Shown piece by piece: positions 2,027 to 31,465 of a stretch of 64,000 nt of DNA. Each line of letters opens with the position of its first letter. Positions within the stretch are counted from its first letter, which is position 1. Below the pieces are notes generated by a model. It searched no databases and was not told the DNA's origin. It saw only the letters and a list, made by a program, of their open reading frames with translations. The stretch is taken from positions 124,001-188,000 of the IMG/VR virus record IMGVR_UViG_3300048924_000191, one strand, 5' to 3'. The translations under genes and the position numbers were made by a program.

Positions 2027-3286
2027 ATGAGCATCACGGGCGATCTGTCTCGGCGTTCCATCCAGCAATCTCAACAACTGTACCGCGACAATGCTGTCGC
2101 ACTAGGCAATGATGCTCTTACCGCCGAGATGGCGTCTTTCGAACACCTCCTTGATCGTCACCGCCGTGTGACTGAAGCGATGCGTTCGGTCGAAGACCTG
2201 ACTCGGATGTTCTTCAGTCAGCACCGTCTCGGTGTACCGATCGAACAAGCCAAGATGTACGAGTTCTCGGTCGAGTCGATTATCCGCGCCACTGGCGAGG
2301 AATTCCCACACGACATGCACGAACTCTCTTTCGAGTCGTCTTACGACTACTCGACTGAAGCTGAGTCGAAGGTCGGCAGTTCCCTGAAGAAGGTCGGCGC
2401 TTGGTTGATGGAAATCCTCACCAAGATCGCAGAAGGTCTCAAGGGTATCCTCACCAAGTTCACCACTTCCGTTCAAGGCAACAAACGCAAGCTGGAAGAA
2501 CGTCTTGCTCAGATGCGTGCCAAGGGCAGTAAGAAAGAAGGTGGCGAGAAGGACGACAAGGAACCCAAGCCAAGTACCGAGGCTAAGGGCCGTGCAATCG
2601 AAGTGCCAGACATCAAGATCCTAGGCGGCACTGGCGTACGTGTCGAAAACACCATCGACAAAGCCAACGCCAACACTCGTAAGGGTGGTCAGGATCTGCT
2701 GGGTATTGTGCGGGCATGTGGTGAAGCAGCCAAACGCTTCAATCCTTCGCAACACACCAGCAAGGACGGCCTGGATGACTTCATGAAAGACATCATGTTG
2801 TCGGTAGGGATGAAGACCGATGGCGGTAATGGTCATCGTGAGTTCCTCATCGTAAACGGTACTGGCGTCGAGATCACCTTCAACCGTAAGTCTGACGCAA
2901 CAGTCTCTGCCAAAGCTGGCAAGATCGCTTACGAGAAGAAGTCTGGTGAGATGCCTGGTCTGGATGAGGGCGAAGCCATGAAGTTGCTCGAGCACCTGAT
3001 TGAGTCGTACAACCAGATCGATAGTCTGCGTAAACCGCTCGACACCGTCTCCACCGTCTTTGGTCAATTGGCCAAGTCGATGAACGACGCGTACCGAGCT
3101 ACGCTGAACTCTCTGGCAGGCGCCGATAAGGACGCTGCCGATAAAGCTACTCAATCGAGCCGCGTGTACTCCACTCTGGGCCACGTCATGGCGACTCTGG
3201 GTCAGCTGCCGTCTAACCTGCTGAGTGGCTACCTCCAGGTTCACTACGCCGCCGACAACTACGCCGACAAAGCGTCTCGCGGTTAA
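2027..3286 (+). CDS. Internal head (inner body/ejection) protein, phiKZ internal-protein paralog family
   Basis: LSFESSYDYSTEAE prohead-protease motif followed by amphipathic helix (LKKVGAWLMEILTKI); similar layout to 3311, 4730 and 15974. Confidence 0.7.
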   Translation: MSITGDLSRRSIQQSQQLYRDNAVALGNDALTAEMASFEHLLDRHRRVTEAMRSVEDLTRMFFSQHRLGVPIEQAKMYEFSVESIIRATGEEFPHDMHELSFESSYDYSTEAESKVGSSLKKVGAWLMEILTKIAEGLKGILTKFTTSVQGNKRKLEERLAQMRAKGSKKEGGEKDDKEPKPSTEAKGRAIEVPDIKILGGTGVRVENTIDKANANTRKGGQDLLGIVRACGEAAKRFNPSQHTSKDGLDDFMKDIMLSVGMKTDGGNGHREFLIVNGTGVEITFNRKSDATVSAKAGKIAYEKKSGEMPGLDEGEAMKLLEHLIESYNQIDSLRKPLDTVSTVFGQLAKSMNDAYRATLNSLAGADKDAADKATQSSRVYSTLGHVMATLGQLPSNLLSGYLQVHYAADNYADKASRG

Positions 3287-3310
3287 TCACTCCTCATCAA
3301 GGAACAACAC

Positions 3311-4714
3311 ATGAGCACCATTTCTGAAGCACTGGCCAAACGCAACATGGCTGGCGGTACTGGTATCCGCGATACCCTCAGTCTGGAATCGGCCGCAGTG
3401 GACGCACGCGACGAAGTCGTAGGTCACATCGAAGGCCTGCATGAAATCGCCGCACAGATCGCCAAAGAAGGCGAGGATATCACCACCGGCACGTTGCTGG
3501 CGGACAACATCGACACGCTGGTCGATAACACCATCCAGGCTTACAAAGAAGGCGGTGTGGACGAGCGTGGTGCTGACCTGCTGGAAGTATCGATCGAATG
3601 TCTGATCCGTGCAACCAACCTGCCTCTGCATTATCGCGCCGTTGTACCTTCGTTCGAATCTGTTGCGCGACGTGAAGACTACTCGACCGAAGCCGAGAAG
3701 AAGAAAGACGGTTTCCTCTCCCGTCTGTTCACCATGCTGCGTGAAGCGCTGGCACGTCTCGGTTCTATTGTTCGTAGCTTCGTCGCTCGCATGCGCAAAA
3801 CCAGCGGTTCGCTGGAAAGCTACATCAAGTCGGTGAAGGCGCGTGCTGATCGTCTGCAAGGTGCCAGCAAAGGCGGTAAGGTCAAGATCGCCCAACAGGT
3901 GGCGTGGAACATGATCGACTTCGGTGGACATCTGCTGAAACCTGCCGACGCTATCGATCGCAACACCACTGCCTACGCTCGCTTCGTTGCCCAAGTGCAG
4001 AACGATCTCGGCAAGGTGACTCAGGTCGGTAAGCTGTCCACCACTCCTACCGACGCTGATGTCGATAAGTGGGTTAAGGAGCAGGCCGAAGGTCTGGGCG
4101 GTCACTACACCACCGGCCTGCCGCATTTGGTAAACGTGGCCTTCCTGCCGACCTGGAAGTTCAACATCAAGCACACTGCTGGTGTCGGTCGCGAGCACGG
4201 TGCCAACATCAAGAACAACCCGCTGATCGGCGCCAAGGCCGAAGTGTTCATGGAACACCAGGGCACTACCCCTACCGAGGCCGATGCACTGTCGGTGGCG
4301 GAAATCCATGCAACTGTCGACAAGGCTCTGCATGCGCTGTCGAACATCCAGCAAGTCGAGAAGAAAATAGACGCCTGGGTCACCAACAGCGATACCGCTG
4401 TACGCATCCTGACCAACATCTCCAAGTTCTTGGAGAGCAAAGAAATCAAGATGCCTGGCCACGACGATACCGTCCGCGCCATCAAGTCGCTCATGGCGGC
4501 GAACAACCTCTACTCCCAGGCATACACCCTGACGCTGCCGCACGCGATCACCATGATCCGTACCAACGTCTCGTTCGCCGACCGCTGCATCAGTCTGATC
4601 TCTCACGGCGAGCTCAAAGAAGTGAATGCCAACCAACACAAACTCCTGGGTCACTCCCCAGCGGCCAAGGCCGAGCCTGAGCACGAGTACGCCCACTTCG
4701 AGCCGGTTCACTGA
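3311..4714 (+). CDS. Internal head protein paralog
   Basis: PSFESVARREDYSTEAE then GFLSRLFTMLREAL; SD AAGGAA; strong codon bias. Confidence 0.75.
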   Translation: MSTISEALAKRNMAGGTGIRDTLSLESAAVDARDEVVGHIEGLHEIAAQIAKEGEDITTGTLLADNIDTLVDNTIQAYKEGGVDERGADLLEVSIECLIRATNLPLHYRAVVPSFESVARREDYSTEAEKKKDGFLSRLFTMLREALARLGSIVRSFVARMRKTSGSLESYIKSVKARADRLQGASKGGKVKIAQQVAWNMIDFGGHLLKPADAIDRNTTAYARFVAQVQNDLGKVTQVGKLSTTPTDADVDKWVKEQAEGLGGHYTTGLPHLVNVAFLPTWKFNIKHTAGVGREHGANIKNNPLIGAKAEVFMEHQGTTPTEADALSVAEIHATVDKALHALSNIQQVEKKIDAWVTNSDTAVRILTNISKFLESKEIKMPGHDDTVRAIKSLMAANNLYSQAYTLTLPHAITMIRTNVSFADRCISLISHGELKEVNANQHKLLGHSPAAKAEPEHEYAHFEPVH

Positions 4715-27877: not shown

Positions 27878-29212
27878 ATGACTGTACACGTAAGCCTGGG
27901 CGACCTGTCGTTCGAATCGAACGAGGTGCTGGCAGTCGATGTTGATCCGAGTGAGTCGTTTGCTGGCGTGCCCTCGGATATTGCCGAGAGTGCTGGTATC
28001 GATCAAGCCGATCGACTGCTCGACGTCTACAGCGCCATCATCAACCGCGGTTGTGTCTGCCGCGCCGACATGGACCAGATCAAAGATCTGACCGAGACGT
28101 TCCCGTCGTTGGCGAAGTTGTTCAAGCGTTACCCGATCAATAGCTTCTCCGTCGAACCCAGTAACATCAACTACGAGGTTTCGACTGAAGGCTTCGCCAG
28201 AACCGCTTACGACGCAGTCGTCAACGCACTGCGCGACGTACTCAGGTTCCTGGTCAACAACCTCTCCCGTCTGTGGAAGTTCCTCACCCAGAACGCTCAA
28301 CGGACTGCTGCCGTGGACGACGTACAAAACAAACTGGCTGACATCCAGCGATTCATCCTGGAAGTCGACAAGATCATGTCCGACACTCCGGTAGCTGCTG
28401 ACTACGCCAAGGCTCGTAAGGCCGTCATGGAAAGCGAGCGCCACAATGTCTCGAAGAGCTGGAACGAGTTCCGTAACTTCGTGGTCACTCGTCCTGCCGA
28501 TTCGTTCGAGCTGATCGACATGTTGTCTGGCGTGTTGAAGGTCAGTGTCCCAGCGTTTGGTGAGGCGGTAGAAACCCTACTGACCGATCTGACCAATTCG
28601 GCTACCGAACAAGACGTCATGGCAGCGGTTGCCAAGATGGAGCTGTTCCAGACTCCCAACGGGAAACTGGCGGCACTGTCGTCGAAGTATGGTTACCGAC
28701 CAGGGCAGATCCGTATCGCAGACAACATGACTCCGTTCCATGCGAATGCGTCGTTCATCAAGTCGATCTTCCGCAGTTGGAGTAACCACCGTATGGACAT
28801 CAGTCCAGAAGCCTTCTCCCAGGCTGTGGTGAGTCAAACAGTCATGAACTGGGGTGAGGTCGTCACAGACGCCGTACGGTCCTCCAGTCAGCGCACAGAG
28901 CGTCTCCTGTCGAAGATCAACAGCTTCAACGAGAACTCGCTCAAGCCTGGCATGGATCAGATCTACTCCACAGTCCTGGTTCCGTTCTTCAAAGCACTGC
29001 TCAGCATCATCCAGGGCTATACGCTCATGGAAGGTTGCTTGGGTGAGTTGGTAGCAAACCGCGACAACGCCGTAATCTCCATTTCCAAAGCGTCGCTCAA
29101 CGTCGCCAAGGATTTGGATAAATTCGTGCGTAAGAATGGTGACCACCTCACCATAGGCGGGAAGACCGTTCTGGCCAGTCGTCGCAGAGCCGTCATCGCA
29201 GCCATGTCGTAA
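27878..29212 (+). CDS. Head protein, phiKZ gp84-like
   Basis: FSVEPSNINYEVSTEG motif followed by amphipathic helix. Confidence 0.6.
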   Translation: MTVHVSLGDLSFESNEVLAVDVDPSESFAGVPSDIAESAGIDQADRLLDVYSAIINRGCVCRADMDQIKDLTETFPSLAKLFKRYPINSFSVEPSNINYEVSTEGFARTAYDAVVNALRDVLRFLVNNLSRLWKFLTQNAQRTAAVDDVQNKLADIQRFILEVDKIMSDTPVAADYAKARKAVMESERHNVSKSWNEFRNFVVTRPADSFELIDMLSGVLKVSVPAFGEAVETLLTDLTNSATEQDVMAAVAKMELFQTPNGKLAALSSKYGYRPGQIRIADNMTPFHANASFIKSIFRSWSNHRMDISPEAFSQAVVSQTVMNWGEVVTDAVRSSSQRTERLLSKINSFNENSLKPGMDQIYSTVLVPFFKALLSIIQGYTLMEGCLGELVANRDNAVISISKASLNVAKDLDKFVRKNGDHLTIGGKTVLASRRRAVIAAMS

Positions 29213-29223
29213 GTGACGAGACA

Positions 29224-29259
29224 GCATAGAGCCGGGGCACTTGCCCCGGCTCTATGCCC
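29224..29259. terminator. Hairpin flanked by CATA/TATG between convergent genes
   Basis: GCATAGAGCCGGGGCA-ct-TGCCCCGGCTCTATGC. Confidence 0.8.
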
Positions 29260-29264
29260 TTACT

Positions 29265-29768
29265 TCACTGTTTACCGTTACGTTGAGCCTCAGCGATCGC
29301 TCGCTTAAGCTCTTCAGCTGTCTGTGCGTCTTTCTGTGCACCCGGCCTGTAGCGTTTGATCATCCGATCCAACACGTACTTAGGCCATTCCAACAGCGTG
29401 TGTACCGATGTGTTTGTCATCTCGGGGATTCGACAGGAGACGAGCTCATCCATGAGCGCATACATCTTCGATTCTCCGTACAACATCTCCGCGTCGTGAG
29501 CGCCCACTACCGACATGATTCCGTCCGGTCCATCCACCTCGCCATGAGGGAACAGGCCGTAGTCGATATCGTACGCCTCCATCAACAACAGTTGAGCCGT
29601 CATCCCGTCTGGAGCCGAATGGTTCATGATCAAATCGAACGACTCGGTACCCTCTTGGAATGGCGAGATGCCATGCCCAAAGAAGGGAGCAGCGACGTGG
29701 TGTATCGTCGTGTTCCCTTCGTCGTCCACTACTTTCCGGAGTTCCGGATTTTGTGGCGGAGTAGGGTA
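29265..29768 (-). CDS. Tail-assembly chaperone-like C-terminal part (GT-type), predicted -1 frameshift partner of the upstream gene; alternative GTG start at 29729
   Basis: -1 frame is open from G_TTT_TTT (29774-29768); SVHTLLEWPKYVLDRMI resembles GT/T4 gp51-type motifs. Confidence 0.55.
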   Translation of the reverse strand, partial: YPTPPQNPELRKVVDDEGNTTIHHVAAPFFGHGISPFQEGTESFDLIMNHSAPDGMTAQLLLMEAYDIDYGLFPHGEVDGPDGIMSVVGAHDAEMLYGESKMYALMDELVSCRIPEMTNTSVHTLLEWPKYVLDRMIKRYRPGAQKDAQTAEELKRAIAEAQRNGKQ

Positions 29769-31465
29769 AAAAACAGCTCGACCGTATTGACTTGTACCAA
29801 CGCAGGATGGTTGGCAATGTCGTCACCGGTGATCGACTTCCCGCACTCAGGGTTCGGGCAGCAGGTCTTCGGAATGGCGAACACGGCCAGGGTCATGTCG
29901 TTGATGAACTTACGGATCTCGGCAACGATACGCTGAGTCTGACCACCGTCGGCAGACAGATCGATCAGTTCCTGGTCCACCGCCTGGTCAGCGGCGTACT
30001 GTTCGTCAGGATCAGTCACGAGACGAGTCACTACGGTCTTCGGCGGAGCGTCGATGGTAGGGACGTGTTCGAAGGCCACGATCCAGTGAGCGTACGCCAT
30101 GATCAGCGCGATGTTGGCCTGACGCTCGATGAAGTCTTCACGTTCCCCGCGGTTGGCGTTGGAAACGATCAGGTCTTTCGCACCGTTGGTCAGGTTGGAC
30201 ATCCAGCTGCCGGCGATACGCTTGTACTGAGCAATGGTCGGCACTTGCAGACGCAGCTTATAACCACCGCCCAGATCCACCAGACGAGAGATGTCTGGAC
30301 GGGTCATGTCCTGGTAGTTGCGGATAGTGGCAACGTCGTGACGACCGCTGCGCTTGGTCATGAAGTTCTTCTGGTGTTCGGACACCCGTTCCCAGCGAAC
30401 GAACAGACCACGGCGCAATTGGATCTTGCGACGTACTACGGTACCGCAACCACCGTTGGACTTCAGGCAAGGACGCTCAAGAACAAAGCCGTCCGGATAC
30501 ATCGAAGCAGCTACACTACCGGCCAGAGGTTCGAGGTCTGTCAGCAGGACGACTTTCTCGAGGTCGGCTCGGTTGGTCGTACCCAGAGTGGACGAGATAA
30601 CACGGTCCAGGCAGAACTCAATCACCGGAATGTTCATGTAGATCTCGCTGGCACTCAGCGAGTACCCGAGCGTATCACGCGCCTGCTCAATCTTCTCGAG
30701 TGCGATCTTGGTCTCAAGACGCAGACCTTCGATAGCGCCTGGAGAAACGGTCTTCAGGTGCATGCCGGTACTCCACAGCGGAGTTGGGAACTCACCGGAC
30801 ATGCCAAGCGCGCCGCGCATCTTCAGACGTTCGTTATTGGAGTTCTCGAACGAGGTCTTGCCTGGAGCCAGGATGTGTTCGCCCACTTGCGGCAGGTTGG
30901 TCCACTGGTCCTGTTCGAAGAGGTCTTTACCAAGACCGTGACGCGCCATCTTCCGGAAATAGGAGATGGCAGCCATCGCAGTGCGTTCTTTCTCAGTTAC
31001 GAACAGAACGGTACCGCGATCGTCGATCGGAGCGCCCAGCAAGTGTCCACCCTGACCGACATCTACCAGTTTCTTACGTTTGGCTTGATGCCGCACGATA
31101 GTCGTGGTGATGTGGGTGTAGATCCGGTCGAGCATCTCGTGATCGTCGTTACCGGCGATGAACGAGCCTTTCTCGAGCAGCTTGTCGAGCTCTTCTTCGG
31201 TCGCTTCTTCGAAGATCTCAACACCGATGTCGATGTTGGGACTGGAGGTCATCTCGCCGCCGAAGACTTCTTCTTGCGGTTGATCTTCCAGCTCTGGATG
31301 GGTCGGCATGTTCTCGAGTTCAGCGAGCTGTTTTGCCAACTTGTCTTCGATCTCAGCTGCCGTCGGCTTGGGTGCTGATACTTGCTCTGCAGCTGGTGTA
31401 GGTGCAGCTTCGGCTGGAGTCACCGGTACTTCAGCGCCAGTATTTTCGTTTTCGTTTTCAGTCAC
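29729..31465 (-). CDS. Conserved protein (phiKZ gp77-like) with T4 gp26/tail-chaperone-like Cys motifs
   Basis: Acidic N-terminus; YPDGF..RPC..GCG, LQVPTI, CPNPECG and terminal ELFFTL. Confidence 0.55.
   Translation of the reverse strand: MTENENENTGAEVPVTPAEAAPTPAAEQVSAPKPTAAEIEDKLAKQLAELENMPTHPELEDQPQEEVFGGEMTSSPNIDIGVEIFEEATEEELDKLLEKGSFIAGNDDHEMLDRIYTHITTTIVRHQAKRKKLVDVGQGGHLLGAPIDDRGTVLFVTEKERTAMAAISYFRKMARHGLGKDLFEQDQWTNLPQVGEHILAPGKTSFENSNNERLKMRGALGMSGEFPTPLWSTGMHLKTVSPGAIEGLRLETKIALEKIEQARDTLGYSLSASEIYMNIPVIEFCLDRVISSTLGTTNRADLEKVVLLTDLEPLAGSVAASMYPDGFVLERPCLKSNGGCGTVVRRKIQLRRGLFVRWERVSEHQKNFMTKRSGRHDVATIRNYQDMTRPDISRLVDLGGGYKLRLQVPTIAQYKRIAGSWMSNLTNGAKDLIVSNANRGEREDFIERQANIALIMAYAHWIVAFEHVPTIDAPPKTVVTRLVTDPDEQYAADQAVDQELIDLSADGGQTQRIVAEIRKFINDMTLAVFAIPKTCCPNPECGKSITGDDIANHPALVQVNTVELFFTLLRHKIRNSGK

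Follow-up and report, generated by a model that had tools for sequence, protein, structure and literature searches.

A very probable conserved -1 frameshift in a jumbo-phage gene with a predicted T4 gp26-like fold

Introduction

A conserved gene of the phiKZ family ends, in one metagenomic virus, close to a run of six T, and a small open reading frame follows it without a good start of its own. We asked whether these are two genes, or whether some ribosomes slip back one base on the T run and join them into a longer protein. The window that we analysed is a 64,000-nucleotide stretch of IMG/VR record IMGVR_UViG_3300048924_000191 (positions 124,001 to 188,000 of that record), and all coordinates below refer to it. 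An earlier note made from the sequence alone had proposed a lambda G/GT-style -1 frameshift in a putative tail-assembly chaperone pair, producing forms of 578 and about 733 aa. We found that the frameshift reading is strongly supported by comparison with relatives, whereas three details of that proposal are not supported. Among the papers and GenBank records that we saw, no report of this frameshift was found.

Results

The proposed slip site and the overlapping reading frames

The upstream gene, here called A, is located on the minus strand at 29729..31465, with a GTG start and a TAG stop at 29731-29729, and its zero-frame product is 578 aa. Twelve codons before the stop it reads CTG TTT TTT ACC, so that the heptamer G_TTT_TTT occupies 29774-29768 (minus strand), as the earlier note stated, and spans the Phe565-Phe566 codons. 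The -1 frame is open from 29822 and reads ...FYPTPPQNPELRKVVDDEGN... into a 154-aa ORF (29729..29265), here called B. In the overlap at 29729..29768 (minus strand) the zero frame encodes TLLRHKIRNSGK* and the -1 frame encodes YPTPPQNPELRKV. The -1 frame extension at 29265..29768 (minus strand) contains 167 codons plus a TGA stop, and consists of a Pro-rich linker and the B domain (PHROG 12109). The predicted fusion, A(1-566) plus 167 residues, is therefore 733 aa, and the junction peptide predicted for this window is ...VQVNTVELFFYPTPPQNPELR. A perfect 15-bp palindrome with a 4-nt loop (29224..29257), directly after the B stop and between convergent genes, is the probable 3' boundary of the A-B transcription unit, although the terminator scan did not call it because it has no T tail.

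The codon bias described in the note was confirmed. In 43 long ORFs of the window TTT:TTC was 179:593, and among the Phe-Phe pairs TTC-TTC was found 34 times, TTC-TTT 11 times and TTT-TTT 3 times, so the TTT TTT pair alone is unusual but not significant. The window has no T>=6 run on the plus strand and seven on the minus strand, five of which are 8-9-mers in a shared, apparently regulatory context.

We next considered whether the arrangement is an artefact or decay, in which a homopolymer sequencing error or a recent frameshift mutation split one originally continuous gene. Homopolymers are error-prone, and one GenBank record (RTH11) differs by one T in this run. However, contigs from four other public runs, one at depth 93, cover the site with no inserted or deleted letters, and the 3 strain differences within B are all synonymous. 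The two-frame arrangement, with A's own conserved zero-frame tail and stop, is also present in all 41 loci described below, from isolates and metagenomes. This explanation is effectively refuted.

Conservation of the T run and of the -1 frame

To test the frameshift reading, we compared the locus with its relatives. A DNA-level search of the phage collection and a single-protein scan of IMG/VR found nothing, and relatives were reached by protein and profile searches. We examined 41 loci spanning 17-100% identity and including PhiPA3, a Phikzvirus, Goslar, PCH45, phiEaH2, RSL2, a Bacillus phage and metagenomic relatives. In 41 of 41 loci B lies in the -1 frame relative to A's C-terminal frame and is stop-free from the T run for 134-190 codons, while A's post-site tail varies from 11 to 45 codons. 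The 686-aa protein of phiEaH2 is not a natural A-B fusion, but a longer A with the same T run and -1 extension. All loci have a run of 5-8 T in the same codon register at the homologous Phe-Phe (or Phe-Leu) codons, even at about 20% protein identity and in a 55% GC genome that prefers TTC. The homologous position carries U_UUU_UUC/U/G/A in 36 of the 40 loci with an intact record, and G_ or A_UUU_UUY in 4. Homologues do not replace the T run with TTC TTC.

These comparisons further bear on whether B could be a separate protein started on its own, with the T run and the frame relation as by-products of a conserved Phe-Phe motif. In the window a GTG at 29727..29729 (minus strand) overlaps the TAG stop (TAGTG) and is a possible secondary, independent start for B in this genome only, by termination-reinitiation; gene callers and annotators do call separate B genes, and PHROG 12109 exists as a family of such calls. 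No Shine-Dalgarno match lies upstream of this GTG, and the start is absent at the homologous place in most relatives. An alignment of 28 extensions is homologous throughout, and 17 of 28 lack any ATG, GTG or TTG between the site and the first conserved motif, H-x5-FG. None of the candidate starts has a Shine-Dalgarno match. Annotated B genes start at non-homologous places, cutting off 20-95 conserved residues, are 68-147 aa fragments, or are absent, as in the Phikzvirus record. The -1 frame stays open through 'spacers' of 17-200 nt in 41 of 41 loci, and Phe-Phe conservation does not require TTT TTY or a preceding T in a TTC-preferring genome.

Synonymous-codon identity is 0.80 from the Phe-Phe codons to the stop, against 0.53 upstream and 0.49-0.58 in the 20 codons just before Phe-Phe, which is in the top 0.2% and 0% of windows in two clades. 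The constraint thus starts at Phe-Phe, inside A. Taken with the lack of conserved starts, this makes an independently started B without any recoding very unlikely, although B could also be made alone in this genome. The second candidate site of the note, C_GGA_AAG directly before the stop, is absent in most relatives and lies downstream of the point where the dual-coding constraint begins, and was rejected.

No conserved RNA stimulator found

A local hairpin is located at 29723..29758 (minus strand), beginning 9 nt after the heptamer, with an outer stem GCCAC/GUGG and an inner stem UCCGG/CCGGA. The 70 nt after the site fold with z = -3.4 and the 100 nt with z = -4.0. However, the stem proposed in the note is specific to this genome and shows no covariation: alifold gave 0 pairs, the mean z of the 70 nt downstream is -0.74 across 29 loci, and 61% of cells pair in relatives, no better than shuffles. 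No conserved upstream Shine-Dalgarno-like stimulator was found either. Such an element is not obligatory for low-level phage frameshifts.

Predicted fold of the upstream protein

A is the homologue of phiKZ gp077, PhiPA3 gp074 and 201phi2-1 gp136 (PHROG 4585, E 2e-65). Its AF2 model has pLDDT 79.7 and pTM 0.77, and residues 222-572 match an ESM-Atlas cluster of PF12322 (T4 gp26) with TM 0.74 by the hit (249 aa aligned, rmsd 3.9). About 20 BFVD 'baseplate hub subunit/assembly chaperone' proteins also match, with probability 0.94-1.0 and TMt 0.40-0.57, although both sides of these comparisons are predictions. Both families share two Cys pairs and a C-terminal E-[LF]-F-F-x-L motif. In A, C333, C340, C536, C541, F565, F566 and L568 are invariant or nearly so, and in gp26 the corresponding features are C82, C84, C187, C190 and F204-F205. 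The link is weak at sequence level, since PF12322 matches 1 of 32 members at E 0.33 and hhalign against a gp26 alignment gave E 0.096 over 49 columns. T4 gp26 is listed as a hub assembly chaperone (PMC3004832), a role known only for T4, so that "tail-assembly chaperone" is plausible for A but inferred.

Other searches gave no further lead. Pfam gave no family for A, B or six neighbouring genes. PDB searches found no solved relative by sequence profile, by Foldseek or by VIA-align wide, and AFDB Swiss-Prot gave only noise. The model of the extension is poor (pLDDT 65.8, pTM 0.42); it matched only its own family in BFVD and nothing convincing in the ESM Atlas, so B has no recognisable fold. A complex prediction of A with the extension gave no answer and is not used as evidence. 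The neighbours of A are an RNA polymerase beta-like subunit, gp78/gp79-like proteins, unknown proteins and, in relatives, a helicase; the gene sits beside virion RNA-polymerase and helicase genes, not tail genes. A homologue was reported among proteins detected early in infection (PMC11849849).

Discussion

These results support that A and B very probably form one recoded gene. In this model most ribosomes translate A to its TAG stop and make the 578-aa protein, and at G_UUU_UUU a fraction of ribosomes slip one base back. The two tRNA-Phe re-pair, perfectly in the A site and at 2 of 3 positions in the P site in this genome, and the last 12 residues of A are replaced by the extension, giving a 733-aa A-B fusion at a fixed sub-stoichiometric ratio. 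The evidence is comparative, without peptide, ribosome-profiling or reporter data, and no RNA run holds this phage. The window's own heptamer is non-canonical because its first base is G, and U-run heptamers are less shift-prone in E. coli than A_AAA_AAG (PMC5009743). It is also inferred that A acts in baseplate-hub or tail assembly, with the extension adding a second binding activity.

That the shift is ribosomal is likewise inferred. The phage RNA polymerase could instead stutter on the T run and add one U to a fraction of transcripts, and normal translation of those would give an identical protein. The site is a homopolymer of 7-8 T in 34 of the 40 loci with an intact record, and the RTH11 record shows that the run is length-labile at some level. 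However, the runs of only 5-6 T in this window, PhiPA3 and HPP-Temi are short for known transcriptional slippage, which usually needs 8-9 or more (reviewed in PMC5009743), and the run always keeps the N_UUU_UUN codon register needed for tandem tRNA re-pairing. In the absence of RNA data, transcriptional slippage appears unlikely, but it remains the main alternative.

The arrangement resembles lambda G/GT and the conserved tail-assembly-chaperone (TAC) frameshift of long-tailed phages (Levin 1993; Xu, Hendrix, Duda 2004; reviewed in PMC5009743) in the -1 shift a few codons before the upstream stop, the downstream ORF without its own start, the two products sharing an N-terminal body with an expected fixed and low ratio, the conservation of the arrangement although sequences diverge, and the implication of the upstream protein family in tail assembly. 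The pair is, however, not a homologue of lambda G/GT. A is 450-690 aa rather than about 140 aa, has a predicted gp26-like Zn-Cys4 fold and not a TAC fold, and is not placed between tube and tape-measure genes. Its slip site is a U run and not G_GGA_AAG. No homology to G or T was detected, and the HK97 TAC 2ob9 appeared only at E 5.7 and probability 0.03. The proposed A-B fusion would also resemble phage P2 E/E+E', a myovirus pair that appears to use a -1 shift on U_UUU_UUG-type heptamers without an elaborate stimulator (Christie et al. 2002), although the P2 proteins are unrelated, seem to be much smaller, and E probably lies in the tail operon next to the tape-measure gene. E. coli dnaX tau/gamma likewise uses a tandem-slippage heptamer to give two forms of one protein at a set ratio, but there the shift shortens the protein and uses A_AAA_AAG with both a Shine-Dalgarno-like element and a hairpin as stimulators.

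T4 also makes two products from gene 26 (gp26 and gp26'), but the second comes from an internal in-frame start and not a frameshift. T4 gp26 is 208 aa and has no N-terminal 220-residue region, its Phe-Phe codons are TTC TTT with no T run, and the next gene (25) has its own ATG. A tentative and more speculative possibility is that gp26-family proteins are the functional counterpart, in T4-like and jumbo myoviruses, of the G/GT tail-assembly chaperones; these phages have never had a recognised G/GT pair. In the nucleus-forming phages the family would have independently acquired the same two-product logic by -1 frameshifting, with the body binding the hub or tape-measure protein and the B domain recruiting a second partner at a fixed low ratio.

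If the frameshift is real, a core gene of the nucleus-forming jumbo phages, a family that includes phiKZ, PhiPA3, Goslar, PCH45 and SPN3US-like phages, is mis-annotated in every record examined. About 245 GenBank phage records hold a homologue, and its second product appears as a truncated 'hypothetical protein' or is missing. Correcting this adds an unrecognised protein of about 700 aa to proteomic, Tn-seq and structural studies of these model phages. It would also be a second, independently evolved case of two-product frameshifting in a tail or hub assembly factor, which would tie the poorly understood T4 gp26 family to the G/GT paradigm.

Gene A has a TTT TTT pair near its end with an open -1 frame

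Gene A is a 578-aa ORF on the minus strand (31465..29729, GTG start, TAG stop), and its 3' end contains CTG TTT TTT ACC and closes with GGA AAG TAG. The heptamer G_TTT_TTT lies at 29774-29768, as had been claimed in the earlier note. The -1 frame is open from 29822, and after the two Phe codons it reads YPTPPQNPELRKVVDDEGN... and runs to a TGA at 29267-29265. The listed 154-aa ORF B (29729..29265) is the part of that frame after a GTG that shares one base with the stop of A (TAGTG), and a shift after Phe566 would give 566 + 167 = 733 aa. A perfect 15-bp palindrome with a 4-nt loop (29224-29257) is located between the convergent B gene (-) and a 444-aa ORF at 27878-29212 (+). It is a likely bidirectional terminator, although it has no T tail and was not called by the terminator scan. 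A 528-aa ORF antisense to gene A (29792-31378, +) has no support and is the usual shadow ORF of a GC-rich gene.

The window is 54.6% GC and its long ORFs use TTT:TTC at 179:593. Only 3 of 48 Phe-Phe pairs are TTT TTT, and therefore the pair is unusual, but not significant on its own. Five A8-9 runs on the plus strand (6010, 11003, 35789, 52519 and 62549) share the context AAC-A(8-9)-GAAAG, which reads CTTTC-T(8-9)-GTT on the minus strand. These runs lie at or near the 5' edges of minus-strand ORFs or in gaps, and they look like a repeated regulatory motif (promoter or 5'UTR) rather than coding slippery sites. Contigs from four other public metagenome runs, one at depth 93, cover the slip site with no insertion or deletion. 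Two of the other metagenome runs carry three substitutions within B (29355, 29370 and 29372), all synonymous in the B frame (AAA to AAG, Lys; TTG to CTT, Leu), consistent with purifying selection on the extension.

Genes A and B are found in phiKZ-like jumbo phages

Gene A belongs to PHROG 4585 and gene B to PHROG 12109, both of unknown function, and neither has a Pfam family. Using tblastn, we found A in 153-245 phage records, all of them phiKZ-like jumbo phages. The annotation of PhiPA3 equates its copy (gp074) with phiKZ gp077 and 201phi2-1 gp136, and equates the downstream ORF (gp073) with 201phi2-1 gp135. The neighbourhood is syntenic and holds an RNA polymerase beta-like subunit (PHROG 2962), gp79-like and gp78-like genes, then A and B, and in relatives a helicase follows.

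Comparative analysis supports a conserved -1 frameshift

To examine whether the arrangement is conserved, we collected 41 loci, counting the window. These included four metagenomic relatives at 53-61% identity, 17 IMG/VR contigs, and 19 GenBank phage records, namely pPa_SNUABM_DT01, PhiPA3, Goslar, pEa_SNUABM_54, RSL2, Xoo-sp14, RTH11, AH06, vB_pir03, Eowyn, HPP-Temi, Bacillus phage AgentSmith, LucasX, SA002, the Phikzvirus PhiPizzaParty, phiEaH2, PCH45, SPFM2 and Halocynthia phage JM-2012. Identity to the A of the window goes down to 17%. In every locus, the downstream coding frame is -1 relative to the C-terminal frame of A and is stop-free from the homologous Phe-Phe codons for 134-190 codons. 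Meanwhile, the number of zero-frame codons between the site and the stop of A varies from 11 to 45, and the apparent intergenic spacer varies from -1 to about 200 nt.

Every locus was also found to have a run of 5-8 T in the same codon register. The heptamer is T_TTT_TTC in 17 loci, T_TTT_TTT in 17, T_TTT_TTG in 1, T_TTT_TTA in 1, G_TTT_TTT in 3 (this window, and PhiPA3 twice) and A_TTT_TTC in 1. One record was irregular: Xanthomonas phage RTH11 (OQ790161, about 3013-3019) has T7 where its close relative LucasX has T8. This puts the tail of A out of frame in that record, such that the annotated 627-aa A reads a wrong frame after the run, and B is still -1 relative to that tail. The difference is a homopolymer length error or a genuine length variant at the slip site.

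The extensions align with each other over their whole length, with the conserved motifs YP at the junction, then H-[VI]-x5-F-G, E-x-Y-D-x3-G-I, H-x2-E-D, and T-G-x6-F-[LM]-x2-P-R. In 17 of 28 non-redundant loci, there is no ATG, GTG or TTG between the slip site and the H-x5-FG motif, and none of the candidate starts in the other 11 has a Shine-Dalgarno match. In several genomes the first ATG is at extension residue 84-96. Accordingly, the annotated B genes begin at non-homologous places and are 68-147 aa pieces. In the PhiPizzaParty record, the 165-codon open -1 extension homologous to B (3158-3652) is not annotated at all and only tiny opposite-strand ORFs are called over it, which is probably also true of other Phikzvirus records. 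In the genome studied here, the GTG at the stop of A could additionally allow some free B.

We further compared synonymous codon usage at conserved residues in two separate clades of eight sequences. Identity of synonymous codons is 0.53 in the gene body, 0.49-0.58 in the 20 codons before FF, and 0.80 from FF to the stop, the last being higher than 99.8% and 100% of equal-sized windows in the two clades. This places the start of dual coding at the T run, and not at the C_GGA_AAG that precedes the stop in this genome. The earlier note had proposed that motif as a second slip site, but it is not conserved and the proposal is not supported. Taken together, the frameshift interpretation is supported at the strongest level that sequence comparison allows and is held with high confidence, although without direct protein evidence as yet.

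Tandem slippage is the simplest mechanism

The simplest reading is tandem -1 slippage of the two tRNA-Phe on U_UUU_UUN. In this window the A-site tRNA re-pairs perfectly (UUU to UUU), whereas the P-site tRNA re-pairs with GUU, matching 2 of 3 positions, and this relaxed site is shared with PhiPA3. Transcriptional slippage on the T run would give the same protein and cannot be excluded for the T7-T8 genomes, but it is less likely for the T5-T6 ones and does not explain the strict codon register.

No conserved stimulator was found. RNAalifold predicted no pairs in the clade of the window, and the 70 nt after the site have a mean z of -0.74 over 29 loci, of which only 4 fall below -2. The hairpin of the window itself (z = -3.4 over 70 nt, -4.0 over 100 nt) pairs in only 61% of cells in relatives, which is no better than column shuffles, and thus the stem proposed in the earlier note is not supported. 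U-run heptamers are modestly shifty in E. coli compared with A_AAA_AAG (PMC5009743). A low shift efficiency, as for lambda G/GT at about 1:30, is therefore the natural expectation, although this is inferred.

The predicted fold of gene A resembles the T4 gp26 family

An AlphaFold2 model of A built on 20 sequences has pLDDT 79.7 and pTM 0.77, with the FF codons lying in the last helix (residues 561-576). Nothing in the PDB resembles the model. Among predicted structures in BFVD, the family of A itself is followed by a long series of 225-306-aa proteins, most of which, where named, are called baseplate hub subunit, baseplate hub assembly protein (T4-like) or baseplate hub assembly chaperone, with probabilities of 0.94-1.0 and TM by target of 0.40-0.57. 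In the ESM Atlas, a cluster in which 84% of members carry PF12322 (T4_baseplate, the gp26 family) matches residues 222-572, with TM 0.74 by the hit and 249 residues aligned at 3.9 A. At the sequence level, the link is below threshold (hhalign E 0.096; Pfam matches 1 of 32 members at E 0.33). Still, both families have two Cys pairs far apart in sequence, C333/C340 and C536/C541 in A and C82/C84 and C187/C190 in gp26, and both end in an E-[LF]-F-F-x-L helix.

T4 gp26 is listed as a hub assembly chaperone (PMC3004832). T4 itself has TTC TTT at these codons, with no T run, and makes its second product, gp26', from an annotated internal in-frame start. T4 gene 25 (2405-2803) starts at a TAATG overlapping the stop of gene 26 (2803-3429) and is thus also in the -1 frame, but it has its own ATG. 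Gene A is therefore best described as an enlarged gp26-like protein with a roughly 220-residue N-terminal addition, its membership in the gp26 family being supported by predicted fold and motifs but not by sequence statistics. The model of the extension B is poor (pLDDT 65.8), with a confident helical C-terminal half that ends in a long charged helix. It matched only its own family, and prediction of the A+B complex gave no answer.

Two points caution against a simple late-gene tail-chaperone picture. The gene is not in a tail module, and Churi gp256, the homologue of phiKZ gp077 and PhiPA3 gp074, is listed among proteins detected early in infection by proteomics, together with homologues of other phiKZ proteins (PMC11849849, Table 1). 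The latter is unexpected for a pure late tail-assembly factor and may reflect early expression or an incoming virion protein. A chaperone role, as suggested in the earlier note, is plausible by remote structural homology, though about as likely as not.

Relation to known frameshifted assembly genes

None of the 19 GenBank records examined annotates the frameshift, and no record carried a joined CDS for this gene. We found no mention of it in the literature searched on phiKZ-like phages, including the core-genome paper, a PCH45 Tn-seq preprint, the Goslar virion structure preprint and part of the 2016 recoding review (PMC5009743), although only open-access papers were covered and an earlier note in a subscription paper cannot be excluded. 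The pair is not a member of the tail-assembly-chaperone family, from which it differs in size and fold, and it lacks the tube/tape-measure gene context. In logic, however, it works like lambda G/GT and apparently P2 E/E+E', with a -1 shift just before the stop of an assembly factor, an extension with no start of its own, and conservation of the device despite sequence divergence. Programmed -1 frameshifts in phage assembly genes are already known, and what we describe here, on comparative evidence, places such a frameshift in a new protein family and phage family.
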